Source: Hyaloraphidium curvatum SAG 235-1 (lineage: Eukaryota; Fungi; Monoblepharomycota). Taken from it: a stretch of 64,000 nucleotides of DNA. The stretch is taken from contig JAIVFI010000015.1 in assembly GCA_025558095.1 (NCBI GenBank), forward strand, positions 496,001 through 560,000, written 5' to 3'. Positions 2,300 to 59,033 of this stretch are shown one piece after another (position 1 is the stretch's first letter; the number at the start of each line of letters is the position of its first letter). The notes beneath the pieces were generated by a model. That model worked only from the letters and a program-made list of their open reading frames with translations. It searched no databases and was not told where the DNA came from. The position numbers and the translations under genes are program-made.

Positions 2300-2302
2300 T
2301 CT

Positions 2303-3313: not shown

Positions 3314-3414
3314 CGCGAAATACGGGGACACTGGTCTTCAGTCATGCGGAGTTTGACTGATCCCTTTGCCCCGCAGTGTCCACGGTCCATTGCCGGTCGC
3401 TCGGGCGGCGCCGG

Positions 3415-8324: not shown

Positions 8325-9962
8325 TTACTTTGCTTCGATCCATTCCTCCCAGGGCACTTCGACCCTGACTTTCTGGTAAACCCATGGAAGGTTGTCGCTC
8401 CCGATCCTCTTGCGCACCTGTTCCGCCAGAGTGTGATCGAACATCGTCTTGAACTCCTCCTCGGTCTGCAGCACATCACAGTAGCTGTGCTGAAATCCAC
8501 CGAATGACCTGACAGCCGCAAGGACCCTGCGCACGGCAGCTAAAGTGTCGTAGTTGGAGTCGCCCTCGCGGACTCCACGGGGCACACCGTAGATTCCGAG
8601 GTTCAGATAGTGCCGCCGCGACTCGTGCTCCGGCGGTGCAGGTGAGCCACGCTTCCCAGGATGGCGAATGAACCCGCCGCGATCGATCATGAGCGCCGGA
8701 TAGACGAGCAAAGGGAAAATCGACAGCTCGCGATCGACCAGTTCGACCATGTCCTGCAGCTTCTCCCGCGGAAACGCAAGGTCCTGGAAACAGCTCCCGA
8801 CGACATCGTTGACGCGCACTTCTGGCGGGCGCAGCCCCTTTAGGAACGTGATCTTTGGAGGCAGCATCCAGCCCATGGTCCAGCGGATCAGTGGGTGATT
8901 GCCGATGGGCCAAACGGTAAGCATGCTCATGCACATTGCCTTGTCGTGGCGCATCAAGTAATCGCGCATCGGCATGAGCTCCCTGTGTCCATCAGGAACG
9001 TCGCGCGCGTGCGAAAAGTACCAGGCTTTGTACCAGCGACCCTGGAAGTTACGTGGAACGCCTTCTTTCGACAGCTTCGCCATTCCGTCCTGGTCGATCA
9101 AATCTCCGCGCACAATGACGGCGTGCGATAGGGAGAAGATGAATGCCTCGAGGAAGAACGAGTCCGGGTCGGCAATCTCCTTCTCGTATGCCTCGCTGAG
9201 CGCGGCGATGGACGTGTATGTGCGGTACGTCACGAGCAATTCCTGCTCCGCGGGCACGACTCGGAGCGTCAGGCTCGTGACGAATCCCAAGGAGCCATGG
9301 CTGAAGCCCGCCGCTCGATACACGTCCTCGTTCTCGGTCGGCGTCGCCCTGATGACCTCTCCGCTACCGGAAACGAGCTCAAACTCTGTCACGGTGTCGT
9401 GGACGAGACCACATTGGTGGGAGTGTGTCGTCATGCCCTGCGACAGCGCCAAACCGCCGATCGTCGCGTCCTCCATCTCCAAAGTAGCTTCGAGCATGAA
9501 CCCGTGTGACAAGAGGTACGTGGTAATGTCACCGACCGTCACGAAAGGTTCGACGGTGACGGTTCGCGCTTCCTTGTCGAGAGACAAGATGTTGCAGAGG
9601 TCACCCATCGGCACCTTCAGTGCCCCGCCTTTTTGGACGGCGCGAACTGAATGGCTACTAGCCTCAGAGCGATCCGTTCGGATGGGCGGACGGCTGTCCG
9701 CCGGCAGCGCGTTCCACGCCTTTACAGAGTCCGCGACGCGACGGACCCGAGCAGCGTGGGCGCCATCGATGCCACTGTCCGATCCGGCAAGCCGCAAGCG
9801 TTTCCAGCGAGCAGGGAGGCCCCAAATTTCCGCCAGGCGCGCAGAGAGAAAGGACAGAGGCAGAACAACAAAGGCAATGAGGAACGGCTGCAGGCGCTCG
9901 CGGAGGCCCGGCTTGCCCGGTTTCGGGGCCTTAGAGGTCGTTTCCTCCTCAGTGGAGACCAT
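8325..9962 (-). CDS. Delta(24)-sterol reductase (DHCR24/DWF1-type FAD oxidoreductase), intronless
   Basis: VTVEPFVTVG, LEMEDATIGGL, SHQCGL, FSHGSLGF, GRWYKAWYF, DYLMRHD, LGIYGVP match the DHCR24 family. Confidence 0.8.
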   Translation of the reverse strand: MVSTEEETTSKAPKPGKPGLRERLQPFLIAFVVLPLSFLSARLAEIWGLPARWKRLRLAGSDSGIDGAHAARVRRVADSVKAWNALPADSRPPIRTDRSEASSHSVRAVQKGGALKVPMGDLCNILSLDKEARTVTVEPFVTVGDITTYLLSHGFMLEATLEMEDATIGGLALSQGMTTHSHQCGLVHDTVTEFELVSGSGEVIRATPTENEDVYRAAGFSHGSLGFVTSLTLRVVPAEQELLVTYRTYTSIAALSEAYEKEIADPDSFFLEAFIFSLSHAVIVRGDLIDQDGMAKLSKEGVPRNFQGRWYKAWYFSHARDVPDGHRELMPMRDYLMRHDKAMCMSMLTVWPIGNHPLIRWTMGWMLPPKITFLKGLRPPEVRVNDVVGSCFQDLAFPREKLQDMVELVDRELSIFPLLVYPALMIDRGGFIRHPGKRGSPAPPEHESRRHYLNLGIYGVPRGVREGDSNYDTLAAVRRVLAAVRSFGGFQHSYCDVLQTEEEFKTMFDHTLAEQVRKRIGSDNLPWVYQKVRVEVPWEEWIEAK

Positions 9963-39017: not shown

Positions 39018-39375
39018 CCTTTGGTCTGGTGAAGTGGAAACGACGCCCCTTCACGGGACGCAACTTCGTGACGTTTTTCCGTCCCCGCGGATCCCCTAGA
39101 TCAAAACTCGGTCGGGCCTCAAGCAGACATAGATTGCAATGATTCGATGCTCATAGTTGCATCGCGGCTGCTGCGGCGCGGGATTGCTCGTCCCGGACGC
39201 CGAGGCGCCCGCATCAGCGCCGGATCTGCGAGACCCCTCCTCCAAAAATCCCTACTCGTCCTTCAAGTTCCTTCGATAGCTCTACTGCTCATCATTTTGC
39301 TGTTGCCGCCGTCCTGCGTCCTCGCGGGCGATCGGTGCGGTCGGATTTGGGGCACGATGCGATGGTGGTTTACGC

Positions 39376-39572
39376 TAGTGCGCGGCGGGGTATACATCGG
39401 AATCTAGAGAAAAACTCTCGAGACCGGGCATAGATAGGGTATGGGTATCGAGCCGCGCCTAATTGTTGCCCAGCAACTCCCTCTTTCCCCTTTCCTCCTT
39501 CGGGGCAGAGGCAGCTGGGCGAACGTTAAGGTGTGGAAGGGGACCGAAAGGTCGGGTGGTGGTGCTCGAGGG
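39376..39572 (-). ncRNA. Candidate omegaRNA scaffold / element right end of Fanzor A
   Basis: Directly follows the Fanzor A stop. Hairpins GACC-tttc-GGTC and GCCCAGC...GCTGGGC; GCGCGG complementary to CCGCGC next to the terminal GCACTA. Confidence 0.6.
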
Positions 39573-42500
39573 TCACGGGCGCTCGAGGCCAGCAGGCCTG
39601 TCGTTTGGGTCGTAGGTGTGGTTCTGTAGCCAGCGTGCCATGGCATGCTTGAAGATGCGGAGCATGTTGATGGCAGCGTTCTGGTCTCGACCCACGCACG
39701 CCAGGTTGCAAGGCCCGTGGTAGCACCACCTGTCACCCCTGCGACGAGCAAGGAGGATCAGGATACGGCAAGGGAAGAAGCAGGAGCGCGTCCGACACGT
39801 ACCACGGTTTGAACGTCGGTATCGACATCGGTGGGTGGAAGGGGGTGGGCTGCCGTCGGCGCTTGCGCTGGCTGCGGTTGTCGAGGCACCTGCGCGTATC
39901 GAGCATCACCGTCCCGCACTTGTGGTGAGTCTTGGAAGTGCGGAACTCGTTGAACAAGATCGGGAGCACGTTGTCCCTCCTCTCGAACTCGTTCACGAAC
40001 CGGCGGAGAGAAGCGCGCATGTGCCCCTTGATGTACTTCATCGATCCCGTCTTGGTCGAGCCCAACGAGATGATGAAGTGCACGGGCTTCTTGGGCGGTC
40101 CCGGGCCGTGCTCATCGGCCATGCGCTCCCGCCGCTCCTTCCGCTTCCGCTGCTCTTTGCGCTTCCGGTTCTTGCGCTGCGTCCTCGTCAGGGCGAGCTT
40201 CGGCGTCCCGGAGACCTTCATGGCAAGCAGCTCGTCCACCATCCGGATCACGCCGATCTGCGCCCCGCGGTAGTTCTCCAGCTTGTGCCGGGCAAACTTC
40301 CACTCGAACTCGACCATCTCGTCGAGGTGCTCCAGCCGGTACTCGGCCCGCTCGCGCACGCGCTGGTAGTCCGTCTGCCGCTTCGATCCGATCCCGTTGT
40401 AGATGTCTGCCATAGAGCGCCCGGCGGGATCGTAAAGCGACGTCGGATCGCCCGGCGGCTGCTGCGTCGGCAGGTCCTGGCTGGCCTGCCAGTTCCTGTT
40501 TGCGTTGCGCTGCGTGACGCCGATCTCCGAGAACCAGCGCTCCGGAGAGATCGAAAAGAAACTGTACTCGGGAGTCCCGTCCGAATGGACACCGCCCGTC
40601 TCCGACGCACACGTCAGTATGGTGTCGATGCCGGGATCGGCGCCGATCTCGCGGACGTCGATCTCGCCCGCGTCCTGTCGCTGGTAGAGCACCTCTGCCT
40701 CCTTGAGCGCGTCCACAGTCATCTTGCGGTTCGCTTCGGCGGCCCTTGCCCGTCTCGCAACGTCCTCGTCCTCGTCGCCCATCCCGTCGACGGCCCGCAC
40801 CTGGCTCGCGTCGTAGACGACCTTCGGCACAATCTTCTCGAACTTTACCGAGACGGCCACGCTGTCGCTCGCGATCGAGAAGGCAAAGGATCGAGGCACG
40901 TTCTTGTACTTGCTCTTGTCGCCGTCAGAAATGAGGTCGTTGATTTTGAACAGCCTCGGCCACGCTTCCCTCAGATGCGGCGAGGTTCGCTGGATGACAA
41001 AGTTGCCGTGGAAGAAGGTGACCTCGAAGTCACGGTACCGCTGCGGAAACAGCCGCTTCCACCGCTTCAGCAGCTCCCCGATGCACCGGTCGCTAGCAAT
41101 GTCGATGTGCTTGGGGGTTGTCGAGTACAAGGGGAGGATCGGCGAGGTGGGCGGCTCCGGATCGTTCCAGTTCGCCGGCCGCGGATCGGGCGGCGGCCGA
41201 GGCACAAAGGAGGCCGCGATCATGTCGTTCGTCCGCCGAATGAACCGCAGAAGGCGGTTCCAGTCATCGGGCGCGCCGTCCATCCCGTTGTGGACGATCT
41301 GCATGTGCCTCCGGATAGCATCAAGGATGAATGTTAGGAGCCGAGCCGTCCGCGCCGGATCCAAGGCCATCTGCGTGATGCCGCCCATCGATCGGAACTC
41401 CCACGTGCAGGCGCCGTTCGTGTTGACGAGGTTCCGGAGGCGCGCGACCGTCAACAGTTGAGGAGAGCCCGCGATGCCGATCTGGACCGAGTTCTCGATC
41501 TGGTGCGCCTGATTGTAGGTCCCCGTAATGTGGCGCATCAGCTTCTCCACCTCCCCCTTCCTATCGTTCCGGAACTGCTTTTGGACGGTCGGCAGAATGT
41601 CCGTGAGCGTCTCTTCGAACCAGAGCTTGTACTCTCCCTCTTTCGCGACGTAGAGGGAACGGTAGCGCGCGACGAGTTGGAGAATCTCTCGGATCAGGAG
41701 CACGGGCAGCAGAAATCGGCGTCCACGCCGCATTCCTGGCGTCTTGTACTCGTACTCGATCGGCTGATTGGCCTGGATGGCGGCGTTCATGCGGGCTTCG
41801 GTGATGAACCTATTGCCTCCATCTCCCGCTCCTTCGTTCCCGCTGAACGAGTAGATCCGAAGCTCCTTGCGGCGCGAGTGGGCTGCGGTGTAGCGGCTGT
41901 CGCGGAGGGCTGTGAGCCTCGTCTTCGGCAGCGCGACCGGTTGTCCATGCCCGTCTTCCGCCACTTCATCGTCGTCCAGGTCGAGGTCAACGCCCGCCGC
42001 CGGAGCGCCTCCTTCTGCCTGCGCCGGTTGTCCCTGCGCGGCCTGTCCCTGCGCGTTCCCCGGGTCCTCCTGCCCCTGCTGGGCCTCCGGCTGCTGTGCG
42101 GGCGCGGGAAGCCTCGGAAGCTCCGCCACCGTCTGCCACTGCAGCAGCGCAAAGTCCTGCTCGAAAGCGGTCTTGAAGTTGCGGTTGCACGCGCCCTTGA
42201 GGTACAGGTCGATGTTGTTCTCGTACTGTTTGTACGAGGAGTTGAATATCTGCGAGCACTCTTCCGAAAAGAAGCTGGGGACCATCCGGTAGGGCAGATT
42301 CTCTCCATCCTCGGCCTCGTTGACCGGGGCCGCGTAGAAGACGGGATACGAGAACCTGAGGCCGTCCTCGTAGGCGTCTGCGTGCTCCTCGTCCGTCGCG
42401 ATTAGCAGCTCCTTGACGGCCGGGTTCCGAACGATCGACGCGTCCGCCAGCTGCTTGCCGAGCCAGATCCTGATCGAGTGCACGAGGAAGGGCAACTGGG

Positions 42501-43179
42501 CCGCCAGCGAGGGCGAGCGGATCACGCGGAGCTCGCCCGTGACGACGAGCATCAGGATGCGGAACAGCAGCGTCTGGTCCAGCGCGGGAAGCCTCTTGTC
42601 CCAGTCCAGCCAGAGGGTGACCGCGTTCTCCAACAGCCAGCACGCGGCCACGCCACATTTGGTGAATTCGTCGGCAAGGGAACGGAAGACGGGAATCAAA
42701 GAAAGGTCGGCGCAGAGTGACTCCATGGAGGTCTTGATCGTGCTCATGACGGTCTTGACGTTCTCAATTCCCGCGGCCTCAGCCTTCTCCAACGTCTCCT
42801 TCTTGCCGGCTGCACGCGCCGACGGCTTGTGATTGGGGCACAACAGACTGTTGCTCCGCTGGTGATCCGTGCGACCACATGACGGGCACGACTTCACCGG
42901 AACTGCAGGCTGTTGAGCGGCGGGCGGCGGCTGCGCGGCAGGGGCGGCGGGCGGCGGACCTGAAGGTTGCGCAAGGCCTTGCGGCGGGGAAGCAGCGCCT
43001 TGGCGCTGCAGGTGGAGGGGAATTGGAAGACCGGGCGGGGGCCCGATGTCGCCACGGGTCAGAGGTTGCCCGAGATGAGCCGGAACAGGTAATCCCGGGG
43101 CATGCCGTCGAGCGGGAGGGGTTTGCTGCGAAGAGGAAGCAGATGTCAGGATGATTCGCGGGCTTGCAGTGCAGGCCAC
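39573..43179 (-). CDS. Fanzor1 (eukaryotic TnpB-like RuvC nuclease), copy A, about 1180 aa or more
   Basis: CPSCGRTDHQRSNSLLCP knuckle, STIKTSM, SIASDSVAVSV, RuvC-I IGADPG, RuvC-II NEFRTSK. Intron 39739-39802 joins KPW to GDRWCYHGPCNLACVGRDQNAAINM (RuvC-III). True start may lie in upstream exons, for example ATG 43894 (MPPRKR). Confidence 0.9.
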
Positions 43180-45581
43180 TTCACCAGAGGCACGTCGTCA
43201 CTCGGCTCCCTCTTCCTTCCCGACCGACCCCCGGCGAAGCCTCCTTGCTCGTCATCCATCATCTGCGGACGACGAACGTGAGAAAATGCGAAAGAAAGGA
43301 GAACTTCACACGCACTTGGTCCAGTCCGTCGAAAGCTTCCCCCATCTCTTCGTCCAGAACCCGCCCGTCCTGCGGCTCGAAATCAGATCGGGGTGCCAAT
43401 GCAACTCGACTCCATGTTACTCGCCGGCATCGTCGCTCTGTCCGACGGACTTGCGCCCTCCGGAGCTGCTCCGCGACGAGACGCCAGATCTGGAAAAAAA
43501 TGAGCAGAGCAAAGCCAGAGTTTGCAGACCAACGCATACTCTGTCCACGAGCTCTTCGACCCCGTGTGGTCTGCCGTGCAGGAGGCGATGCGGCGATGGC
43601 GGGCATCGGCGCCGGAGCTCCTGGCTGGGCGACGCGGCCCCGGGTCGCTCCACGACGGGCAGCCCGGCCACCGCGACCCCCGCGGGCCCCTGCTGAGATC
43701 TCTGGATGATTTCCGATGCCCGCCGCATCGGGAGTTGCTTCCGCCGCGGCTTGGGGGGCACCCTGCGCGGCGTCGTCGGCCGCGCCGCCGCCGCGTCCCC
43801 GGCCGCGTCCGCGCCCTCTGGCTGCTCGGGGCGCTGCCGCACTGCTGTTGCCACCCGCCGGCGTGGCGGCGTCCGCTCGCTTCCGCGGTGGCATTGTTGT
43901 TGCAGTATCGTGACGTCGGTGATGATTGCGTAGTCCGAGCACAAAATCAAACCCAGCGCGGGTGATGGACGCGCAGGCCCTTACAGCTCCAAACCGGTGC
44001 GACGGCGCGTTAAGTGCCGTGCAACAGCTCCACAACCGCCCGCCGCTAGGCTTGCCCTCCCTGCTCTCCCTAGTTGCGGGGTTCACCAGCCCGTGACCGG
44101 GGGTCCGACGCGCTCAGACCGGCGAGCGGGATCGGACTCCCGCGTCCCCGCGAAAGCTCCCTGCACCGAAACGTAGAGGCTGGGAGATTGAACGCCAAGG
44201 AACTCGCGCTCGATTCCGCTCTTCTTTCGATTCGGCTGCCAGCTTTGAGGGGACTCCCGCCAGACCTTCGCCGCATTGTCCTCGCGCCGGCGGATGTCAG
44301 CGCGGCTCCAGATACCCGCGGGCAAAGCAATTTTGTCCTTTGAGCTCGAGAGGAGGATAGACGCGACCACAGGACCTCCGTTGCTTCCAATGTTTCGGCG
44401 AGGCGAAACGGTCAAGCAACCAACCGATGCGGTGCAGGATCCTCAGCATTGGCCCCTGAGCGGCCGAAATCCTCCTCGAATCGTTTTTCCTCGCGACATA
44501 CTGGGAACTAGGCCACCTTTCTGCGGAATGCCTGCGGTGGCAGGTCGCGGAAAGGAAGTTCCATGTTTCGACGGTACCGCGGGGCTTCGGCCGTCGTATC
44601 GGCGGTGATCGGGCGCAAAAAGGAGCCGCGCCGTCGGCATCGTCTTCCAAGATGCGTTTGGCGCCGTCTAGGTGCCATTCCAACGGAGATGCGTTTGCAG
44701 GTTGAGGTGCTTCGTGAGCGTGTTCGTGGGGGCGGTCGGCAAAGTCAAAATCAAACATCAGAAGTCTCCGGTTTCCGATCTCTTCATGTACGGCCAGGCC
44801 AATGCATCTGGAGAAACTAGCATGGGCCCATACTTTGGACATGTTGTCTTCACAACCCCCCGTGGCCCGAGTCGCGTCGTCCCGTTCCGATCTGACCTGT
44901 GGACGCCAACTTCAAGCTAAAATAGCAGGTCAACGACCGACTGCTGCACCTTCGATTCGCATTCTTGTGACGCCTGGAGCACGTATGGCAAAGAGTCAGT
45001 ACAGATAAGCAGGGCGCGTGCGTCGAACGCTTCGAACGATGCCCGGAGCGGGCAGGAAAAATCCGCAAGCGGCTCAGAAAGACGTGCTTCAGGATACCAC
45101 CTCAAGCATGCAATGCAAGCGTCATACCGTCCGCGTTCCAGACTTATTTGGTCACGATCGTCGCAAGAGTGGGTCGCAGGGACCGTAGCCTATTCCGCAG
45201 CAGCACGATGGCCTCCCCGACGGTGCCGCCGACGACAAGGAACATCACGGGCACAGTTGTGTTGCAGTCTCGCCACCAACTTCCACGATGCTTCTGACAT
45301 TGCATGTGAGACCGCAGCAGCGAGGAGGGTACCCTCACAAGGTGCAACGGCCCCAAATCAGAGGCTGCCATGCAGGCACTGGAAGGACAGCTTGGCCAAT
45401 GGAGACGGAGACAAAGGTGCGGGGCCGCCACCCTTTGAGATTCAGGCAGCAATGAGACGCTTTGGGACTGGCTCCCGCTGCAATGAGACAGGGCGAATGG
45501 TTGTTGCGTGTCGAGATTCGGAGGTAAGGCGGAAGGTTGGCTGCGTCCGTGGTCCGCGACGACTCCACCAACGGCCTTACC

Positions 45582-45766
45582 CGGTCTACGGCCGCTTCTG
45601 GTCCACTGCCACTGTGAACGGTCTACCGTGGCCGCGAATGGTCCATGGAACCTTGCGATGATCTACTGCGGACTCCGGTGGTCTGCCAAACCTGAAGCGG
45701 TCCACGACTGCGCGAACGGTTCACGGATACCCCAAATGGTCTACGGCGATGCGCAGGTGGTTCACC
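45582..45766. repeat. Periodic array: 10 copies of YGGTCYAC-like motif with variable spacers, period about 20 bp
   Basis: Motif starts at 45583, 45600, 45620, 45640, 45660, 45680, 45699, 45718, 45738, 45759. Confidence 0.75.
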
Positions 45767-45936
45767 ACCGCTGTTTCCGACTCGTGTCGGCATCTTTCAC
45801 GCGGAACAGACATTCCGCCGACCCCAGCGGCCATCTATGGCGCTGCCGCGCGCTCTACGGTGCTCCAGAGTGCGAAGGTACAGGACGTTTTAACTTCTAT
45901 TTCTATCAACTTCAACTAGGGCGAGTCGGCTAAGGG

Positions 45937-45963
45937 CGACTGCGCAGCAGTGCTGCGCAGTCG
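45937..45963. repeat. Perfect 13 bp inverted repeat (hairpin)
   Basis: cgactgcgcagca-g-tgctgcgcagtcg. Confidence 0.9.
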
Positions 45964-45965
45964 GG

Positions 45966-46014
45966 ACGGCGTCGCAACGGCGTCGCAACGGCGTCGACGG
46001 CGTCGACGGCGTCG
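45966..46014 (+). repeat. Tandem repeat ACGGCGTCG(CA) x5
   Basis: Read directly; followed by TATATAAA at about 46028. Confidence 0.85.
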
Positions 46015-46198
46015 ACTCCGCCCTGCCTATATAAAGCGCGGGACATGTAATCGAAGAATCTTGATCGCCTCCAACCCCCACGCACGTACTCTCCGTGTCG
46101 CTTCGGCTTCGGCGTGCAGTCCGCCGAGCCCGCACTCTGAGAGCCCTTGGGACGCCCGTCTCCGGAAACCTTCCGCAACGACTTTCCCCGGCCGTTTG

Positions 46199-49123
46199 CT
46201 AAGTATACTCAGCGCCGTTCGCTAATTCACGTACAGGGCCTCCCTGACCCGAAGAGCCGAGCGGGATTCGCGCGCCGGGTTGGAGCTTCAGGCCCGGTTC
46301 TGACCCGGACCGTCGCAAGAGGGCGGCAAGGAGTCGGGGTCCAAGCTTCGCCCCGCGCGGACCGGAGCGGCAGGACTTAGGAAGCCGGAGATATCCTTCA
46401 AACTGCCGCCTGCCCCGTTCGTCAAGTCTGCTCAGGAAGCGCACGGCCGGATCGCCCGAATCGGGTGAGTAGCCGCTCAGTGTCGCCGCACGACCAAAGC
46501 GATCCGCGACCATTGCCATCTTGGCGCCTACTGATGTGCGGACGAGTCGCAAGACTGCCCGGAGGGAGGGCCAGGCCGCATAGCGCCCGTCTAACGCCCA
46601 CGGCGGGGTGCATGCGCCCGAGGCGTCGGCCGCCCAGTGATCGGACCACTTGTGCCTGAGCCTTTCGATGAAGCACCGGGTTCGGCGCATCTCTGGGCTG
46701 GCTGAGAGCTGTTGGCTGCTCATTAAGGAGAATTGGCGCACGGCGGGTGCGCAGTAGCCGGCCGCAGCATCCACGAGGTCGGAACAGAACTCAATCCAAG
46801 CCTCGTCGCCTCCCGCGACGAGATGACGGACAAGCGCCTGCAGCCTGGCATCGAACTTTTCAGTCGAGTTCATGCCGTCGAGCTCCACGGGGGCAGAGTA
46901 GGAAATGCAGAGGTCGCGCAGGACGGCCGCCAGCTGCGGCCCGAGGCTTTGCGTAAAGGCCACGCGGAGATGGTTCAGGTCGGGCACTTCCGGATCGGAA
47001 TCCACACATCCCTCCTGCCGCTGATGGATGTCCCGAGAACCTTGCGACTCTTCTTGCCCGGACGCCCACGTTTGGTGTGGCCCCAGCAGCAGGTAGCCCC
47101 TCTCGTCGCAGTAGGCTCGCGGCAACTCCAGCACCAAGGCCCTGTAGCAATCTACGGCAAAGCGGATGCGCTGGGGTGCCCTTGATCGCGTGTATGGACG
47201 GCTGCTGACAGGCTTGCCCTCCACCAGGTAGGAGCAGAACCGGTCGAGATGCTTCTCCGAAATCAGAGCCAGCCGGCGCAGCACGTTCCCATCCGGCGCG
47301 ATGCGGGCATCGATAAGGGCGCGGTGGAACCTCCCCATCCACGGGTTGCGGCCCAGCTTGATCACATCGGTCACCAACCAGGCAAGGTCGAGTTCGCGGG
47401 GCAAGGAGCGGAACGAGTCGCAGATCCCCACAACAGCAGCCGCATGAAAGAAGGGAGAAGCGACGCAAGGACAGTGCGACGCTAAAGTAGGTGCAAGCGA
47501 CCCCGAGATGGGAGCTGTGTCGGCATCGGCATGCCGTTCAGGCCCCGCAGAGTCGGCCGCTGCGGCAACGGGGCGGACATCCGACAAAGGAACAGGCAAT
47601 GTGCCCAAAGAAAGGAGCCCTTCGGCGGCAACGAGCCGGGTGTATTCGGCCGCGCTGGCCTTGAAACAGTGATGGAAAATCTTCGAAAGATCCATGTCCG
47701 CGACCGCATCCACTGCGCGCTTGATCGAGGCGATGAGCTCCTCCTGCGTGGACGGGCAATCGGCCCTCACGCGGTGCTTGGTCATGGCAAAGAAGATCTC
47801 TGCGGGATTGAACTGCGGCGTGCGACGGTCCGGGCCAAGCCGGGCCTATTTCGGCTCTAGCCGGACGCGCAGTTGCGTGCCACTGCTCACGGGTCGCACG
47901 CCCGATTGATAGGCCTTCACTTGGTTAGTTTGCCGGGGTTGAATAGACTTAGCTCCGATGGTCTCCGGTTGCGGTTGCGGAAGGTTTCTCAGAAGGGGAC
48001 TCCGGTCACAGAACTCGGGCTCCGCAGTCAAGCGAAGACCGGACTCCGAACGGTGCGTCTTCCGAGCGGAACGGTTACTTCGGTACGACTTCGAACCCCT
48101 TTCAAGACTACATTCGCGCTGCTTATATATTCCCCCTGGAGGCTGGTGACGCCATGGCCATGGCCATGGCCCCGGGGCCCACGCCTTGGCCCCGGCTGCG
48201 CCTCCTCTATGCCCCGCCTATGCGATGCGGTTGATATGGAAAGTGTCCCCAGATAGGAAAATGTTAACCCAGGCGGCCCGTGCCGCCACAGGCGACTGGG
48301 GCCTCATGTAGGCGAGCGAAAGGTTGTTGGCGGAAGCCACCTCCCTCACCGCCTTAAACGAATTAGTGTTGGAGCAGTCGCGGTAAGTAACGGTGCCGTC
48401 GCGGGCCTTGCGCTTCAGCAGTGGCGGTCCGTGGAACCCGGCATTGTCAGCAATCACCGTCAGGGGCGCCGCCGCCCTTTCGGCGCCGCTCTCGCTGCTG
48501 GTTACCGTCCTGAGGAAGCCCACGAACCGATCGTTGTCCGTGGTTCCGTTGTGGATGATGTACGACACCACGCAGCCCCGGTAGTTGCCAGGCCTGGGCA
48601 CGGCAGAGATGCACACCCGTCGTCTTGGTACCCCTGTGCAGCGGTCTCTCGACGACTGCTTCGTCGCCCTTGCGCGCGTAGCCGTACCTGGGCCCATCGT
48701 TCAGGTAGAACCCCGACTCGTCCAGCGCGGCCCTGTTGGCCGGCTCGCTAGCGAGAATCTGCTCGTGGAAAGCAATGTGCCTCTCCAGCTGCGCCGCAGC
48801 CTCGGAGCTGACGTATCTGACCTTCTTCCGCACGATGCCCTGCCTCCGCAGCACCGTAGAGACGTGTTGCTGACTGACGGGCACACCGAACCTGGTTCAA
48901 AGTCCTTCGCCAGTCGCGCCTGGGTGACCGTGACGCGCTCCAGGGCCTCCTTGGCTAACCATGCGGCCCGTTCAGGAGTGACCTTAGAGCTGGCTGGCGC
49001 CCGGCGGGGCTCCTTTTCCTGCGGGACAGCAGCTGCTTCGGCCTGCCAGCGGAAGAGGGTGCTGCGATTGATGCCAAAGAAACTGCATATGTTCGGGACG
49101 GGGATTTCGAGCCCGTTCTTCAT
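46199..49123 (-). pseudogene. Decayed IS630/Tc1-type DD57E transposase with long C-terminal extension (paralog of 54369-57626)
   Basis: HTH (GINRSTLFRW), ALDESGF, IADNAGFH, and RPQSP/QFNPAE once the solo LTR is removed. Frameshifts near 48890 and 48615. Confidence 0.85.
47821..48290 (-). mobile_element. Solo LTR (470 bp)
   Basis: TG...CA termini with imperfect inverted ends (12/16 match), 4 bp duplication GGCG at 47817-47820 and 48291-48294, internal TATATAAG on minus. Removal restores the transposase SPQFNPAE motif. Confidence 0.8.
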
Positions 49124-49135
49124 GCCGAGCGAACA

Positions 49136-49321
49136 TAGCTACACTCTCAGAAACTGCTACTGTGCCCCCTGTGCCGCAATCCTTTGCGGCCTAGCAGCAA
49201 TGTTCATCATCGAGCCTGCGAATAAAAGGCGGTCCCTGACGGACTCCACCTCGATCAAGCAAATGCAATGGCGCCCACGTGGTGCATGGCACGCCAACTT
49301 GTAACTGTTTCCGCGGCCAGG
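49136..49321 (-). ncRNA. Candidate omegaRNA of Fanzor B
   Basis: Follows the Fanzor B stop; hairpins tggcg..cgcca, aggtgg.gtcc..ggac.cgcct, gccgcaa-agga-ttgcggc; shares GGCTCGAT with the Fanzor A downstream region. Confidence 0.35.
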
Positions 49322-52300
49322 TCAGCTTGCCGGCTTGAGCTTCTTGACCGACCCATTCGCGGCGCTTGCGGCCGTACGCTTGCGGCCTGTGGCGGCACCT
49401 GGAGCTCCCGGATCAGCTCGGGATGACGCTCGGGATGACCGTCGCGAATGCGAGCGCGCTCACCCGCGGACTTGCGCGGCGCTGCACCAGTCCCAGCTCG
49501 GAGCTTGGGCTGCGGCTTCGGCTTCCTGGTGTCCGGCCTGAACGGCCAGGGGCGCTCCCCTCCGGTGATGAGGCCGAACCAGAAGAGGTGCTCCATGGAG
49601 TGCACACTGTTCACGTCGCGCATCCAGAAGCGGCGGCAGAGGGGACAGTATTTCACCCCGCGCACCTCGCCCTTGGAGCCGGGGTTCCGGATTCCGACGA
49701 CATAGGTGGTCTTGCAGCTGGAAAGGACGTCAGGCGAGTCGGATGATCACGGCGGCTGCCGCACCAGCTGCACATTTGGGACGTGAGGTACTCGTTGACC
49801 AAGACCATGATCCCGGCCTTGGCCAGCTCCGCCCTGAAGCGAACGATCCGGGAGGCCGGGCCGCCCTTGCTCGCATGGCCGAATCGCGCGGCGCCGTATG
49901 CGATGGTCGTCTGTGGATCGTACTTGCCCGAATACGGGTTGCGACACATGTCGCGACAGATCCAGCTGAGGACCTCGCGGCGCCGGCGAATCGTGCGCAC
50001 ACGATCCAGGCTGCAGGATGCGTGAGCGAAGTCGTTGCCACAGGGATTGGCTTGCCCACCTCCGTTCTCCGGAACAGTAGACGTCCAGGATGCGGTCGAG
50101 TTGTGGCAGCAGCGCCCTCGTGTAGTCCGAGAAGGCTGCACTGTTCGTTGTGCGTTGAGAGGGCAGGTCGCGCTCGAAATCGTGGAGAGACTTCTGCACA
50201 GGGTTGCCCTCGCAATCGTTGACGTCCAGCATGGTGGTCCGCTTGGTGGCATTCAGACGCGCGGCCGCCTTATCGTAGCCGCACAGGCGGCGGTCGAGCT
50301 TGGCCGGAACACCGAGGATGAGCTCCGGCAGCGCCGGGGTCCCCGCACGGCCGGCACCAGCGACCTCGCCCCACAGCTTGGCACCAAACTCGTCCGTGCA
50401 GCCGCCAGGGGTCGGGAACAGTTCGACGTTGCGCCGAGCGTGCTTCTCCGCCTTTGCAGCGTCGTTGGGGCGCGAATCGGGCGCCGGCGGCTTGAACTCC
50501 GAGATCTTGGGCTCCCAGAGCGGGTGGTGTCTGCACGCTCCAGCGGCAGGCGGCGACGGACCGAAAGACCTTGCGATCCGCTTAGTATCGGAGCAGGAGT
50601 GCTCTAGGTGGAAGCCGACGATCCTCCCGAAGCTGACGGAACCGTCGGCCTTGGACGGGTTCGCCCGCTTCGGCACGTAGTGCGACTTGGTGCCGTCGGC
50701 ATTGGTCACGGTGATGCGCTCCGTTGTCCCCGGCAGATGACTGTTGGCGAAGTCGTAGCGTCCGTTCGGCCCGGGGTTCAGGCTCTTGGCAACGATCCGC
50801 ACGTCGACGCGGCGGTTGGCAACAGCCAGAAACCAGCGATTCGGATCCACGTCGACGACCCCGCCCTCCACTGGCTCGCCGCGCTCGGCCCGCTCGAACA
50901 TTTCCGCCTGCGTCGGCATGTGCAGGAGATTGGGTGCCAGCACGGACACATGGTCAGGGCGGCTGAGGTAGTAGACGGGAATGCCAGTCTTGAAGTCGAC
51001 CGGGGGCCGCGGCAACGGCTCGGCAGAACGCGGCGGGAGCGGAACCGGGGTCGGGGCCAGCTGAGGAGGTACGGGGGCAGCGAACTTGCCCTCGACCGTT
51101 ACCGTCGGCGGCGACGGTTCGACCGCGCAAACGACGACTTCGGGAGGGAAGCAAGAAAGGAAGGGGGAAGGAAGTGGCGGCGAGAAGTCGGGGAAAGGAA
51201 GGGCCGCGCATGGATGCACAGAAGTCTCGGGCACCGAGTCACCGGGCGAGACAGTCGCGCAGGGAGGGTCGTTGTGCCCCGAGCTCAGGGGCGCGAACAC
51301 GTTGGGCGCACAGTCCACGGCCTTGCAGGCGGCATCTTGACAGCACGAGCACGGGTCGTGCACCCAATGCGGGGGCGGTTCCGGGGGAATGGAGGCAGGG
51401 AGAGAAGTCGAGGCTGGTGGTTCGACGAAGGAGAAAAAGGGCGGGGGTTCCGGCGGGACCGCGGCGGGGATGCCGCAGTCCGCCGGAGGCTCGGAAGGCA
51501 TGGTGGTGAAGTTAAGGTTGCTGCTGGCACAATAAGAGGGCTCCCAATCCATCGGGACCGATTCGTCCCCTTGGGCCGTCGCCTGCAGGTAGTAGACCAT
51601 GCCCCCATGCCAAATCCGATTCTGGCCTGGAAAAGTGAGGATCCGATCAGCCTCCGAACCCGTGCGTCACTGAGCAAAATGCCCACCATCGAAGACAGCC
51701 ATGTCGCACGGCGGGTCCGGATCGCCGTTTGGCAGCCATGGACCGGTGTAGAGCGGCGGGTAGGGATCCATCGGAACATCGCGAGGGAACGAAACATCCA
51801 CTTCGAAAGCAGCAAGACCGGCGGGCACATGAGCTGCGGCGGGAACGGAGACGGTGGGCCGAGTTTGAACAGGAGGAGCCGGCGCGGCTGCTGGCGAATG
51901 CGCTGCGCGCTTTGGCGGCTCGACGTCCTGTGTCGTGTTTTGCCGCTCCTGCTGCTGCGACTGCTGGAACGAGACCTTTTCCACGAAGGAGACTTCTTCG
52001 TTAAGAATGCCCAGGGTGCTGCCGCAATGATAGATGCCCCGGACGCCGGAGTACCTCAGAACGTCCGCGGTGCGACGATAGATGGGCTGCGTGGCGGCGG
52101 CATGGCCCCTGGCCGAGACTTTGCCCTGCTGACGGAGGCGGAAGAGCCGGTCCTCGTTGACGAGTTGGTTGCCGCCGTTGAGCAGGTGGCCGAATAGGTA
52201 GTCCGAGTCAACGCGCGAGGTGTCGATGCCAGGCGCGACCTCCACGCCCAGCTTGGACAAAAACTCGGGCAGATCCGAGGCCGAGATGTAGACGGTCACG

Positions 52301-54372
52301 GGGGACAAGCTGATTTCGGCGACCGCAGCCCGAAGCTTCCGCCGCGCCCACGAGGCTGCCTTTTCCTTGCCGGTCTGGGCGGCGCCAAGCCCCGCCATCG
52401 CGGCGGCGGCGGCCGCCTTGCGCTCCCGCCGCTTCGTCTCCATGGTCTCCTTCTTGGCGAGTCCCTCGGGCCCCGGCTGCGGTCGGCGCTTACGGAAGCT
52501 CACGACGAACCCGTGCCATCGCTTCGGGGAGCCATTCTTGCTGTAATGCCGCTTCTCGACGCGGTGCGGCCGCCACGTGTTGCGGGCCCTCCTGGTCTTG
52601 TTCGAAGCCTCCCTGTCCTTGACCGGAGCAGTTGAAATGGTTGGGAAAGTTGGGGTTGAATCGGGGTCCCTGGCGGTGCTCGTCCTCCGCGCCGTTCCAG
52701 GTTCCGGCAGTGCAGCAGCCGCGGACGCGGCCCTCTTCTTCAGCGCCTCGTCCTGCTTTTCGAGCTCGTGCAGGGCGATGAAGCACATCTGGAAGCCGAA
52801 GGCTTCGTCCGCGGGGTTCGTGGATGAACGACACTTGTCGAGGTCATACTCGCTCATCCGCGCCACCAGAAGCTTCTCGCTTTCCCAGTGGGGCCGGTTC
52901 TGCCCCACCAATGCCGCCGCCGCCGCCTCGTTCATGTCCTCGGCGTGCTCGGGGACCCAGAACTTGGGTTTCTGCTCTGTCGACCGAATCGTTGCCGTGG
53001 TCACGGCCGGGTAGCGGAAGGGGATGCTCCGAAGCTGTAGACGGTTTGCAACCACCCAGTCCCTCAGCTCCTGCAGCTCCACCTTTCGCAAGTCAGCCTT
53101 CTCCGCAGGTGAGGCCCGCGGCAGCGTCTCCCAAATGTTCTGGAGGTAGCTGCGCACCGCCTCCGTTTCCGCGTCGACCTTTCCGCGCGGCTTGCCCTTC
53201 GGCAGGTTCACGGTTCGCACCGCGGCCGCCACGGGGTTGCCCGCCTGCTTGTCCTGCAGGACCCGAGCGATAACCCTCCGCTGCGAAACGGTTGCCGGCA
53301 CCGGCGGCTTCTGTTTTGAATCCCGGAGGTCAACGATCCGGTTCAGCTGCAAGCCTCTGAACGGCCGGAGGAGCCTCCCCAGCCCGACCCTGAGCTCCGT
53401 GGCCTCGGCGAGACCACAGCCAAATGCGCTTTCGAACGGGAAATTGGAGAAGTCGTCGTCCCCATATCCGAGCTTTGCCAGAGCGTAGCTGAGGATTGGG
53501 CCAATCCGCCTCCGGCCGACGCCCGCGTTCACCTCCCCGCGTAGGAAGCGACGGATGAGAACCTTGAGCGCAGTCAGCAGCCGCTGCGGCACGCTTCGAG
53601 CTCGGTTGAAAGCGACCTGCTCGGCATAGCGGAGCAAAGGTCCCTGCACGAAAAGCGGCCTGAGCTTGTCGTACGTCTCGCCCACAAGTTCCCGCGCCTC
53701 TGCAAACGCAGCAACGGCCGCCTTGCGGACAAGCTTTGCCGCTGCGTTGTGCTCCGCGACGGTGAGAACGGACGGTGCGCCCTGATCAGCAACCTGCGAG
53801 AGATCGGGGGTGTCCTCAGCCGTAACCAAGTCCTCGTCCTCAATCTGATCCAGCTCGCCGTGCAAGAAGTCGGCCAAGATCTTGGCGCCGGCCTGGTCCT
53901 CGGCCATCGCGTCGTCATCGTCCTCGAAGTCAACGTCCTCGAGCACCTCGTCTCGATCGTCGTCGTTGGCTCCGAGGTCCGGACCGCCGTCCACAAGCTG
54001 CTCCACTCCTGGCGCCCCCGAATGGCCCGAGTATCTCGCCCCAGCACCGAGCCCGGCCGACTTCTGCTTTCCCGCGCGGCGGGTTCCAACAGCGGCGGAC
54101 ATCTGGCCGGCACCAAGCACGGCGTGGATGGCAATCTTTGCGACGTAAGACGGGGGAAAGCTGGCGAGCATGTCCTGCGTGACGGATCCGTCTTGGTCCG
54201 GGAGCTCTTTGTTGTGGATCTGCAACAAGATCTTGGTCCAGATGATCTTGAATAAGATGGCGGCGAGGGTGCAGGCCTTGGTGATGAGGGGCCCGACTTG
54301 CTCGTACGGGCCCCGCGCCCATGGGTGGCACACCTCGGCCGCCGGGAACCACTTGACGGCCAGCTCCGTCAT
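49322..54372 (-). CDS. Giant Fanzor1, copy B (about 1609 aa, 4 introns)
   Basis: Introns 51627-51686, 50011-50059, 49718-49764 and 49399-49463 (all GT-AG) join the ORF pieces in frame: RuvC-I VDVDPN, RuvC-II NEYLTSQMCSCC, KYCPLC, RuvC-III WMRDVNS, C-terminal bipartite NLS-like RKR...KKLK. Confidence 0.85.
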
Positions 54373-57300
54373 CGTCTTGTATCGCTCGTGCTGGGGGTCG
54401 CCAAGTGCGAGGAAGCCGTTGAGCGCGACCCACCGCCGCTTCGGAGAGCACTCCTGCCGGTGCCTCCCGCCACCGGCGAACAGAAAGGGCAGGACGAGCC
54501 GCCGAGGCCCGTAGGAATGTTGGCTTTGAGGTTTGTCGACGCGAACGGGACAATGTAGTGTGCGTTGGCAATGAACTGGCCGAACGACGTGGTGAGATTC
54601 CTTGGGGCGACCAAACTGTCCGCGGCGGCGGTCAGCTTCGCATCGGTCCCAGGCATGCATGGAAAGCGCGGTGCAACTCACGCCCCACGGTGGTTCTCCT
54701 CGACATGCTGCCGGAACTCACTCTCGAGGTCGAACTGATGTCCCTTCCCCGGGCACGCTCTGCAGGTGAGGTGCGCACCCTTGACGTGGTGGAGGAGCCG
54801 AAGCTCGGCGTCATAGACACGCTCCCGCGCAGCTCCGTCAGCCACCATCCCCGACGCCGCGACCTTGCGCCGCCGCCCAGCCTTCGCCGGGACTTCGCCT
54901 TCCACCTGCACACTGAAGGAACAGAGCGGACAATCCCGCTTCTGGATACGGCCGAAGTCCAGCAGTCCAACGGATTCCGCGTGGAAGTGGAGCTTGGCGT
55001 CGAGCGCGGTGCGCGCGGCCTCCTGCCGTGCTTCGGGGTTGCTACCGCGCACCAGCGCGGGCATACCGCACAAGTCCAGGGTAAAATCGCGCATCTTGGG
55101 CCCCGACTCCAGCAGCCGCAGCGTCACCATGGAAGAGTGTTCCCACCCGAGCTGCTCCGCCTTCAGGAACAGGGTTGCCAGCAGCTTATCGCCCTCTGCA
55201 TCCAGTCCAGGTACGCCCGGGCTCATCTGGAAAAGGCCCGGGAACGAAAGCAGCTGCCGGGGCAAAAATCAGTTTGGGATTGCGGGGCTGCTCGACAGGA
55301 GATTGCACACCAGCACGGGAACGGAACCCGGATTCTCGATGGCGAGGGCCTCCTCGTTGGCCGCCATCGGGTTCCACACCGCCCAATCGAAGAATCTCTT
55401 GCGCCCTTCCGCATTGCGACTCGCCACACTATCCGGCAAACGCGCCGCCATGACTATCTTGCATCGCTGCGGGAGGGAGAGCGAAGCAAGGAAGTACTCC
55501 AGGCCGGGCGACGCATCAAAAAGCGAGCGGCCCTGCTGGTCCTTCAGCGTGCGGCACGCTTCCTCCAGTATCTGCCTAAGGTTCCTTGGCAGAGACTCGG
55601 TCGAAGCCGCGCGTTCGAGGTACTCCAACCGACAGACCTTCGAAATGGGCTGGTGAACATAATGCAGAGCACGACGTGCTGTCTCGGATGTTTCGAAGCT
55701 GTCCATGCGTGCCCTCCCGGCCGGGCCGAGCTGTCCCCAGAGAGAAACAGCGAGCGCACGTAGCCATTCTGGTCCACGACCGTTTCGTACAAGGCCCGAT
55801 AGGAGGATGGCGAACCTCTCGTCCAGCACGGTGTCGTTTGCAAGGGCTGAGAGCGGAAACAGCTGTTTCAACGCGGCGCGGCTGGCTTTCTTGAACGAGA
55901 CGTTAAGTTCCGGTGGGACGTCGGCATAGCGGGCGAGGTTATCCAGCTGGGAGATGGAGACGTCGGGGGCTGACGGCGGTCCCAGATCCGCGCCATCGTC
56001 CGCGGGGCGGAAAAAGGGGGGTGCCGGTGCGTCTGGTCCGATCAGACTGGGGGCGACCCGGCGCCGCCGGGCGACGATGTTCCGGAGGCGCGCGACGAAA
56101 AGCTCGCGCTCCAGCTTGTACCCCCGACCCGATGCCACCCGCTGACAGATGAACTCAAAAGGAGCTTCACCGAGGTTGGAGAGGCCCCCGAGGACGTCCG
56201 CAGCGTCGAAGCCCGCGGTCCTTTGAGCGGAGTCCGTGAAGTCGTTCCACGGCCCAAAGAATTCCCTCGCCGAACCATCGACGTGGAGAACTTCCCTCAG
56301 GATCAGCAAAGTGTGCTTTTGGTGCGGGTTGATGTGGGCGACGCCGAGGTTGCGAGCCTGCTCGGAGTGGGCGTTGTCGTGAGTCAGCGCGGTCTGCATG
56401 CCCGATGCGCAACCGTCATGGCAGTCCACCTCTTCAGCGAGCCGCTCGGCCGCGTTTGCTTCGGTCTGGGTCGCTGCTGCGCCCTCCATCGCGGAAGGGC
56501 ACGTCTGAGGAGCCGGAGAAGCAAAGGCAGAGATCTGACCTTGTAGTGTGACCTTCCGCGCCACACATTTGCCGGCGGACGCGGATTCCGCGATGCGCAC
56601 AAACTCAGCCTCGCTTAGCTTCAAGCAGTGCCGGAACGTCGCCATCAGATCGCCGTGGCCGACGATTTGAATGGCCCTCTCGATGGACCGGACGAGATCC
56701 GGCACCGTCCTGGGGCAGTCCCGCCTCACGAGGTTCTTGATCGTGGCAAACACGTACTCGGTCGGGTTAAATTCCGGCGATCTCGGTCGCAGGTAGATGA
56801 GGCTCAGATTGTTGGCCTTTGCTACGGCCTGGACCGCAAGGAACGACTTGCCCGAGAGGTTCTTTATTATTGCCGTGCCGTCCGTGGTCTTCCTTGCCCG
56901 CAGAGGAGAGCCGTGGAAACCCGCATTGTCCAGGATAACGCCCAGGGACTCGGACCCACAAGCCCCGGCGCGAATAGTCTTGAGAAAAGCACAGAACCTC
57001 TCGGTGTTCATGTTGCCGCTGTAGATCTGGTACGAGATCACGTTTCCAGTGTGATTACCGGGTCGCGGAGTGGGTGAGATGGCGAGGCAAAGGGTCACCT
57101 TGGGGCCCCGGTTCCCTGGCAGGTATACGACGGCGGGAGTCCCCTTCTCCGAGTAGCCGAAGCGCCCCGGATCGTTGAGTTGGAATGAGGACTCGTCCAA
57201 GGCACCTAGGCGCCCCAAATCAAAGGAAGTGACCCTCTCGTGGAACATGCGGTGCCGCTCGGGTTGTTTCAGGGCTTCGGCGCTCTTAATGGTGAGCTTC

Positions 57301-57626
57301 TTCCTCGTGACCCTGTTGGCCTTCAGCAGCCGCGAGATATGCTGCTGCGACACCAAAACGCCAAACTTTTCCGCCAGGTCAGCAGCGAGCTCCCTTTGCG
57401 TCACGCGGACGCGAGCTTTGGCCTCGTCAACTACGTGCCGGACCATTTCCTCGGACACCTTGCGGAAGGCCTTGCGGGGATGGTCCGGAACGGTCTGAGC
57501 CCCACATCGGCGGATCCAACGGAAATACGTCGTTCGGTGAATTGCGAGTACAGCAGCAATCTCGTCCGGGCCAAGCTTGCCGGTCTGCTTGAGCCGAACC
57601 GCGGTTTCTGGCCCGCTCAGAAGCAT
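54369..57626 (-). CDS. IS630/Tc1-type DD56E transposase fused to a helical domain and C2H2-like zinc fingers (about 1044 aa, 2 introns)
   Basis: HTH, ALDESSF, ILDNAGFH, SPEFNPTEYVF. Introns 55254-55310 and 54616-54681 join in frame to CPLC...HHVKGAH and CRAC...QHVEENH. Confidence 0.85.
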
Positions 57627-58216
57627 GTTTTGGCCGTGCCGTTCCCCGACGCGACGCAGGAGGCACCACGCGCCTTTTGCGATGGAGACTGTGCTCTAGC
57701 GGTTGCAAATTCGCACGCGGCGACTCCGGCAAGCTCGAGTAGCGGGACCTGTGTGTGAAACGACAGTAAAAGTAGGGGGGAGTAATAAGTCCCTTATATG
57801 AGCCTCTAAGGTCATCCGCTCACGGTGTGACCCGATCTCCCAGCACACGCGACCTTGGACCACGGGAAGCTCGGCAAGGTGATTATCGCCGGCCTGCGGG
57901 GCCTGCCGGCGAAGGGAGGAGACGCAGGAGATTCTGAGGGAGGCCGGGGCGCGGCGGACGGACGGCCGGAGGGGGCCGGAGGGGGCGGAACGCCGTGTCG
58001 GCCGGTCGAGGAACCTCTCGCACCACTGCCGGGACTCTCTGGGACGCGGAAGCCGGTGGGCGGGCGTGTTCTTGGACCGCGTCGCTGACGGTGTTTCCTC
58101 GGAATCGGCTCTGCTCTGTTGGACACCTGCCCCGCTTCGCGCCTGCTCCACCTGCGACTCCCCGCCCCTGCCCTGCGCGCCGGCCGCCGACCTCCACACC
58201 CCTCCTCAAACACCAG

Positions 58217-59033
58217 ATGCTCATCCCGACCAAGAACCGCAAGGCCATCTACGGCTACCTCTTCCAGGAGGGCGTCGTCGTCGCGCAGAAGAACTTCAAC
58301 GCGCCCAAGCACCAGGACATCGACGTGCCCAACCTGCAAGTGATCAAGGCGCTGCAGTCGATGCGCTCGCGGGGCTACGTCAGGGAGCAGTTCAGCTGGC
58401 AGTACTATTACTACTTCCTCACCGACTCGGGGATCGAGTACCTGAGGGAGTACCTGCACCTGCCCGTCGAGATCGTGCCCAAGACGCACATCAAGAGCAA
58501 GAGCACGGGGTTGAGGCCGGGGCGTGAGTGTTTTGCCGGGGAGGGATCCGTGAGGCGTGCGGGCGTTGGTTGGCGGGCGTGTGAGGGTCGGCGTTGTGGG
58601 ATGAGATGAGACCGCCGGTGCGGATACCGGCGAGGTCGGCTGCGCCGGCACGCATGCCGGCATCGACGCCGACACCGGTGCTGCTCTTCCGCATCCTCGA
58701 GTGCCCGCACGCACGTCGGGAGCACCCGCGGCCATCGGCCCCGCACGCACGCACGGCCCCTTCGCACTCGTTCCACATCGGCACCAACTGAACCACTTCC
58801 CCCTTCTGCAGAGGAGGACCGCCCGCCCCGCCGCGACGGCGACCGCCCCTTCGGCAGGCGCGAGGACCGCGAGGGCGGCTACCGGCGGCGCGAGGGACCC
58901 AAGGAGGGCGCGGGCGGCGAGTTCCGGTGCGTACATTGCGGCTCGTTCGTGCACATATTGTGCTAACGCGGTGTGCCTTTGTCTGCACAGGCCGTCGTTC
59001 CAGGGTGGTGTGGGTCGCCCGAGACCCGAGTAG
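58217..59033 (+). CDS. RPS10: 40S ribosomal protein S10 (eS10)
   Basis: [23 protein letters not shown]...[33 protein letters not shown]; RG-rich tail across 2 introns. Confidence 0.95.

Follow-up and report, generated by a model that had tools for sequence, protein, structure and literature searches.

A transposase and a Fanzor nuclease in one spliced gene of an apparently active IS630/Tc1-type transposon of Hyaloraphidium curvatum

IS630/Mariner transposases located beside TnpB or Fanzor nucleases are known as separate genes (PMC3627910; PMC10691335; PMC10530073). In a 64,000-nt stretch of the freshwater fungus Hyaloraphidium curvatum SAG 235-1 (GenBank assembly GCA_025558095.1, contig JAIVFI010000015.1, positions 496,001 to 560,000 of the forward strand; hereafter the window), a transposase and a Fanzor are, judged by architecture alone, very probably joined in one spliced gene. 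The gene is carried by an element termed family 1 (49136..57763, minus strand, flanking dinucleotides included), a recently amplified and apparently active cut-and-paste transposon of IS630/Tc1 type.

Several described systems share parts of this layout. Mariner/Tc1 elements with Fanzor1 (PGv-1 and PUl-1; PMC3627910) also carry an IS630-Tc1-mariner DDE transposase and a Fanzor in one element, but as separately encoded proteins, with terminal inverted repeats (TIRs) and TA duplications, whereas family 1 has one spliced frame of 2,653 amino acids (aa), hardly any TIR, flanking dinucleotides that differ from each other and a distal motif; 'fusion' and 'fused' are not among the words of that paper. 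IS630-linked TnpB of branch DDE-6 (PMC10691335), including that of giant viruses, likewise pairs an IS630 DDE transposase with a TnpB-family nuclease, whose 3' end lies at most about 250 bp from the element end (186 nt in family 1). Unlike family 1, DDE-6 has separate genes, a separate helix-turn-helix (HTH) protein and symmetrical ends, and belongs to prokaryotes and viruses. Fanzor1 proteins such as SpuFz1 (PMC10432273; PMC10530073; PMC10711439) resemble the family-1 nuclease in having a split RuvC, a Glu placed six residues ahead of a C4 finger, introns and a conserved non-coding right end. They are stand-alone proteins of about 600 aa with a DPG motif and a 4-5-nt transposon-adjacent motif (TAM) adjoining the element, whereas family 1 has DPN, large insertions, an N-terminal transposase, and its sole flank motif 26 nt from the junction.

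Two further systems resemble family 1 in how they insert. Type V-K CRISPR-associated transposons (CASTs), which use Cas12k, and engineered TniQ-TldR (bioRxiv 10.1101/2025.08.27.672191) link a TnpB-family protein to DDE transposition, and Type V-K CASTs insert, as family 1 does, in a fixed orientation and spacing from a motif. These Tn7-like systems consist of several proteins, their nuclease is dead and their dependence on a guide is proven; in family 1 the RuvC is intact, no guide match was found, and Pfam scans of the gene pieces gave no TnsC or TniQ match. Spy transposons (PMC4122938) are eukaryotic DDE elements that insert between target bases without duplication, but their transposase is IS5/PIF-related, their target is AAA^TTT, they carry no Fanzor, and the absence of duplication is proven by empty sites, whereas for family 1 it is read from the junctions. 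A word search for a natural transposase-Fanzor fusion found none in PMC3627910, PMC10691335, PMC10530073, PMC10432273, PMC10711439 and PMC13565253, with Repbase and most of the subscription literature outside its scope, and a literature search for Fanzor with Hyaloraphidium was without result. While both parts are known, the literature searched describes neither the single frame nor the distal target motif nor the apparent lack of duplication.

The core of the window copy extends from G57761 to C49138 (about 8.62 kb). The stretch 49136-57763 occurs in 10 copies in the 31.9-Mb assembly at 99.7-99.9% identity and with unrelated flanks; such near-identical dispersed copies with common ends are those of a transposon. 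The single 2,653-aa frame is open in seven of the 10 copies (C7a, C6a, C5, C3, C6b, C28 and C11), while copy C7b encodes 2,596 aa as the result of an in-frame 171-nt deletion and one further copy has a 5' deletion and an internal stop. No non-autonomous derivatives, which could have supplied independent insertion sites, were found in the assembly. The frame runs from an HTH-DD56E transposase through a helical region and zinc fingers to a Fanzor RuvC with D/E/D intact. The features of the window copy are as follows, a slash marking the junction between flank and element; family 2 is a second family of the same genome, and L029 and L042 are metagenome contigs.

57788..57795, minus strand: target-side motif AAGGGACT; relative to the first G of the element it lies 34 nt upstream
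57627..57763, minus strand: left end and 5' non-coding region, junction TC/GTTTCAC (TA/ in four older copies)
55311..57626, minus strand: exon 1, HTH and IS630/Tc1-type DD56E transposase, then about 430 aa without Pfam match
55254..55310, minus strand: intron 1, 57 nt, phase 0; its retention would bring in an in-frame stop; family 2, L029 and L042 have a modelled equivalent
54682..55253, minus strand: exon 2, CxxC and C2H2-like zinc-finger region, kept in all families
54616..54681, minus strand: intron 2, 66 nt and phase 2, which RNA shows spliced; position and phase equal in family 2, L029 and L042
51687..54615, minus strand: exon 3, with a third CxxC, tracts of acidic and of basic residues, and a long region that matches nothing in the databases
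54477..54480, minus strand: site of a private 1-nt deletion, TT in the window copy and TTT in the sisters, creating a premature stop
54369..54372, minus strand: ATGA overlap; here the stop that ends the shifted frame early falls on a Met codon inside the fusion frame
51686-51627, minus strand: intron 3, GT-AG, spliced in RNA
50060..51626, minus strand: exon 4, a stretch rich in proline followed by RuvC-I (DPN; Asp codon 50847-50845, which is D2200 in intact copies)
50059-50011, minus strand: intron 4, GT-AG, spliced in RNA
49765..50010, minus strand: exon 5, RuvC-II, which has a conserved Gly and, six residues ahead of the zinc finger, the rearranged Glu (49793-49791; E2535)
49764-49718, minus strand: intron 5, GT-AG, spliced in RNA
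49464..49717, minus strand: exon 6, in which the C4 zinc finger is completed, and RuvC-III (RDVNS; Asp codon 49617-49615; D2578)
49463-49399, minus strand: intron 6, GT-AG, spliced in RNA
49322..49398, minus strand: exon 7, end of the fusion frame including the stop codon
49136..49321, minus strand: 3' non-coding end and candidate omegaRNA scaffold, 186 nt after the stop codon, ending GTGTAGC/TA

RNA evidence comes from assembled contigs of one run (X1), compared over 49250-55240 (5,991 letters). Introns 2-6 are skipped in these contigs at the predicted GT-AG sites, and the acceptor of intron 2 is 54616; no joint to an acceptor at 54524 is present among the contigs, in which rare forms are dropped by assembly. 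An extra T near 54478, between intron 2 and the ATG of the overlap, is present in the RNA, where a contig carries the additional base behind 54478 and the sister allele at 54354, and in all nine sister copies.

A first-pass annotation of the window, made from the letters alone, had described six GT-AG introns, a TGA at 54371-54369 overlapping an ATG at 54372-54370, and a Fanzor frame open back to 54681. All of these are confirmed on the minus strand, the last five introns also by RNA, and the placement of a Fanzor module beside a DDE integrase is supported. The view that the introns yield two intact genes is not, given the 1-nt deletion that separates the window copy from its nine sisters: when spliced, its transposase frame ends after aa 1,044, and the frame beginning at ATG 54372 has 1,609 aa. 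The ATGA overlap is a by-product of this private deletion, which may be a true mutation or may stem from a consensus error within a run of T. Conservation of the overlap in other copies had been named as a check, and its lack as a refutation; it is found in one of the 10 family-1 copies, in none of the nine sisters and in no relative, so that an intact OMEGA (short for 'obligate mobile element-guided activity') element expressed by stop-restart is not supported, and the overlap has no role. A transposase-Fanzor fusion, also proposed there, does hold for the family, but for another reason than the AAG acceptor at 54524, for which the length arithmetic is right (2,622 aa): intact copies are in frame through the ordinary CAG acceptor at 54616, and it is this site that the RNA uses within the suggested region 54300-54700.

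The fused layout is conserved in relatives. Family 2 has five copies of about 8,650 nt with 65-71% DNA identity to family 1 in the best parts, and its modelled frame of 2,684 aa is found in four of the five, requiring an AAG acceptor and a GTTTGT donor (L011:7004-7055 and 8359-8418) that are the same in those four, which agrees with the AAG acceptor that the first-pass annotation had noted in the MAPEG gene of the window. L029, an ENA metagenome contig from another organism, has a modelled frame of 3,180 aa, and of eight near relatives most follow the same five-intron path; in L042 the frame is open across the junction to the contig end. These four lineages (families 1 and 2, L029 and L042) have in common a phase-2 intron that directly follows the C2H2 finger and is itself followed by similar residues. 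Two single-copy, frameshifted loci, L030 (G000:C2:426000-435999) and L031 (G000:C2:397000-406999), have the fused layout with longer frames. Between families 1 and 2, pN is 0.12-0.46 and pS 0.64-0.70 in all four blocks tested, and identity is 84% in the RuvC-II exon and 65% in the DDE domain, showing at the level of sequence that both catalytic triads (DDE and RuvC) are under purifying selection. In L029, the region behind the transposase (2200-3650) looks internally duplicated, with two similar blocks, where L042 apparently has one.

In a quick tree, the six transposases with the fused layout cluster together (SH-aLRT 94), and unfused IS630 elements of the Hyaloraphidium genome are their sister group. 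Outside this group falls the transposase of Gonapodya prolifera L052 (KQ965747.1), which has the same two enzyme types as family 1, but as separate genes: an IS630-type transposase of 538 aa with its own stop, and an 845-aa DPN-type Fanzor about 4 kb downstream on the same strand. G. prolifera presumably belongs to the same class of fungi as the host. L053 and L054 showed no Fanzor motifs, and a scan of JGI metagenomes gave distant transposases only. On the contig of P0006 (ENA ERZ27297709), a transposase of a neighbouring group is followed about 3.4 kb downstream by a TnpB-type gene.

One gene might still give two products, if retention of intron 1 or intron 2, an internal start or proteolysis released a separate transposase and Fanzor. 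An in-frame stop lies in intron 1 of all modelled families, but these stops sit in the branch-point CTGA and need no special explanation, and intron 2 is spliced in RNA. The long low-complexity linkers would suit a division, as would the sister elements, which work with an 822-aa transposase alone; against this, family 2 has no Met at the position equivalent to 54372, and the frame has been kept over deep divergence. Separate products have a low chance of being the right explanation, and a single fused product is preferred.

Database queries were made with single exons or stop-free pieces, exons being joined only to count frame lengths and motif positions, and annotated full-length fusions in other organisms may have escaped such queries. 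Exon 1 matches DDE_3 (PF13358; E 5.8e-15) and HTH families, and its DDE triad D144, D233 and E290 (codons at 57197, 56930 and 56759) is invariant in three families. The nuclease residues of intact copies are D2200, E2535 and D2578, with zinc-finger C2542, and the last exons match weakly a TnpB zinc-finger family in Pfam. In an alignment of five families, Glu is placed six residues ahead of the C4 finger, which is a signature of Fanzor (PMC10711439). RuvC-I reads DPN and not DPG in families 1 and 2, L029 and Gonapodya; because DPG is called 'near exclusive' (PMC10711439), while the catalytic Asp and the Pro are retained, the DPN element is taken as a Fanzor variant.

A piece of L029 matches PF07282 (E 1.4e-9) and TnpB-like Atlas clusters (feature score 0.96), and a sequence search of the PDB gave weak TnpB/Cas12f-type matches only (E 0.04-0.6). 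With the RuvC frame of a relative, a word-based search returned no homologs, and a single-sequence AlphaFold prediction was unusable (pLDDT 35.6). The middle 1,800 aa match nothing in Atlas or Pfam, and the long region of exon 3 is probably an expanded Fanzor N-terminal region. RNA-guided, TAM-dependent cleavage by the family-1 protein is predicted. Other PF07282-type matches, unlinked to family-1 transposases, lie at G000:C5:336026, C14:724943, C12:33579, C15:378576 and C23:297326.

The guide RNA may be encoded at the right end, where position and conservation point to an omegaRNA. Three families share conserved non-coding blocks here, among them a 37-nt stretch that is 92% identical in families 1 and 2; Rfam has no match for the right end.

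The ends of the element are not those of canonical Tc1/mariner. A repeat search found no terminal inverted repeats, the inverted match between left and right ends is weak only, and by eye about six of the eight terminal bases match. Family-1 junctions read TC/G...GC/TA in six copies, with TA at the left in four older copies; those of family 2 read NA/G...GC/CA in all five copies, those of the metagenome family TA/G...GC/CA, and those of L030 TA/G...GC/TA. TA on both sides, as a TA target-site duplication would give, is present only in the older family-1 copies and one single-copy relative, and because the transposase type fits while the duplication does not, the element is filed as IS630-type rather than canonical Tc1/mariner. 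The outermost base on each side follows the family, not the site. The simplest single reading of these junctions would be insertion between N and A, mostly at T^A, without duplication, although a 1-nt duplication could also account for them. In locus L025, at about 5300-5400 and upstream of its transposase, AAGGGACT stands 34 nt before TC and then A with no element present, which has the look of a footprint left by excision of family 1; it is one case only, sharing 13 nt with the left flank of the window copy.

Upstream of the insertion sites, family 1 has the motif AAGGG(A/G)YT at -34 to -27, on this side only and in one orientation. Its information content is 6.77, as compared with a null mean of 2.41 and maximum of 3.68, and none of 2,000 random sets reaches it; the downstream flanks, used as a control, contain no significant motif. 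AAGGGRYT-N24-TA occurs at 23 sites genome-wide, two of which are occupied by family 1, and two more copies, including that of the window, match the motif with TC in place of TA. Family 2 has a different motif, GCGTCGATC, an exact 9-mer that four of its five flanks share, as happens in none of 20,000 null sets; its GTCGATC core is at -29 in three flanks, at -26 in one and at -14 in one.

Fixed spacing and orientation from a motif are the behaviour of Cas12k CASTs. Insertion of family 1 might accordingly be RNA-guided, the Fanzor part with its omegaRNA binding a TAM-like motif and a guide-matched sequence, and the fused DDE domain inserting about 30 nt away without duplication; the presence of both enzymes in one frame and the difference in motif between families would fit. 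The 24 nt between motif and junction, however, match no extant 3' flank beyond chance: with 3' flanks as guides and target regions as targets, the best match is 8 nt, where null maxima are mostly 8-9, in a comparison that covers the 3' flanks of extant copies and not donors since lost. Flank-derived guides were rejected on this ground as the source of target choice, as was a fixed internal guide, since the sole near-match within the element is in a hairpin of family 1 that is absent from family 2. Moreover, the motif is constant over many insertions, the RuvC is intact here and dead in Cas12k, and dead TnpB or Fanzor2 fused to TniQ gave no directed insertion (bioRxiv 10.1101/2025.08.27.672191). 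RNA-guided insertion is improbable on this evidence, and reading of the motif by protein is preferred.

The protein that reads the motif might belong to the host. Tethering by host factors is common in Ty elements and Tn7, and a real fusion could leave the choice of target to a host DNA-binding factor or a chromatin feature that tethers the transposase, in keeping with the degeneracy of the family-1 motif. Yet two related families in one nucleus have unrelated motifs and spacings, which is simpler if the reader is encoded by the element, and host tethering is accordingly given a slight chance. Two genes coupled by ATGA stop-restart, or a fusion through the rejected AAG acceptor at 54524, have next to no prospect of being correct: the overlap and the arithmetic are right for the window copy, but family 2 and the metagenome families, like the sisters, have no stop there, the RNA carries the extra base, and the acceptor would stop intact copies at aa 1,160.

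With one spliced gene, a conserved frame and intron position, both triads and motif-spaced insertion as its basis, the preferred model adds a fused product, protein-read targeting and homing by the fused Fanzor; taken as a whole, it is moderately probable. One polypeptide would excise the element, and an element-encoded DNA-binding part, either the zinc fingers or the expanded recognition lobe of the Fanzor, would read the upstream motif, thereby placing the DDE domain at a T^A step about 32 nt from the motif, apparently without duplication. The Fanzor part would load the omegaRNA from the right end, with its guide taken from the 3' flank, and would cut the empty donor site after excision, so that the element is restored when the cut is repaired from a sister copy. 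TnpB homing has been described, as has co-evolution of the transposase target with the TAM (PMC13565253). The fusion would tie target choice and empty-site recognition to one specificity module, favour action in cis, and keep target choice and homing in step. As the junction would supply only one or two fixed TAM bases, the distal motif could add the missing specificity.

Several points weigh against this model. The case for a product acting as one polypeptide is drawn from DNA and assembled RNA contigs; that run X1 is RNA is a guess, backed by its spliced joints, and no RNA contig listed spans the gene or links intron 2 with the extra base. Intron 1 lies outside the RNA-compared stretch, and its retention would leave a transposase of 785 aa alone. 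The introns of family 2 and of the metagenome families are models, two of those in family 2 being at weaker sites (the GTTTGT donor and the AAG acceptor). An open path by itself proves little, because a blind intron finder, used as a lead only, always finds some route and can route around the frameshift of the window copy too; for this reason, weight was put on the common intron position and not on openness. Variable codons among the near-identical family-1 copies (17 synonymous, 24 non-synonymous) give no strong signal of selection. The fold of the right end does not differ significantly from shuffled sequences (z -0.62 and -0.19). The motifs were derived post hoc, that of family 1 from 10 sites, with C5, C6b and C11 as poor fits to it; the assembly holds no independent insertions, and no empty site was found, no search with joined flanks having been made.

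Around the element, the window contains further features. The fusion element sits directly at the 5' part of a broken IS630-type element of the sister group (45580-49129, minus strand) with a 470-nt insert at 47821-48290; this sister element has an 822-aa frame in L026 and copies on C23, C5 and C3 at about 96%, and the short tandem-like repeats at 45580-45760 vary in copy number among L025-L027. Another Fanzor gene, which is spliced, stands alone and has a DPG motif (39573-43894, minus strand; repeat 39365-45700), with near-full copies on C21 and C7 at 94-95%, lies 2.3 kb downstream of the neighbouring IS630 transposase, with which it may form an unfused IS630-plus-Fanzor unit. As a fused-type RuvC query misses divergent separate Fanzors such as this one, the neighbouring IS630 elements are termed 'unfused'. 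On the plus strand, about 450 nt from the left end of the family-1 element, a frame at 57995-58609 reads like a gene for what is presumably ribosomal protein S10/eS10.

A striking ATGA overlap, as this locus illustrates, can be a frameshift of one copy. RNA guidance, if true of family 1, would make it a natural counterpart of CASTs in a single protein; even if its target is read by protein, it is a eukaryotic transposase with an orientation-specific and family-specific target motif. A 2026 review argues that scarless elements are well served by homing nucleases and that DDE elements may gain less from them (PMC13565253). With nuclease and transposase in one reading frame, family 1 makes the role of Fanzors for eukaryotic DDE transposons testable in one gene.

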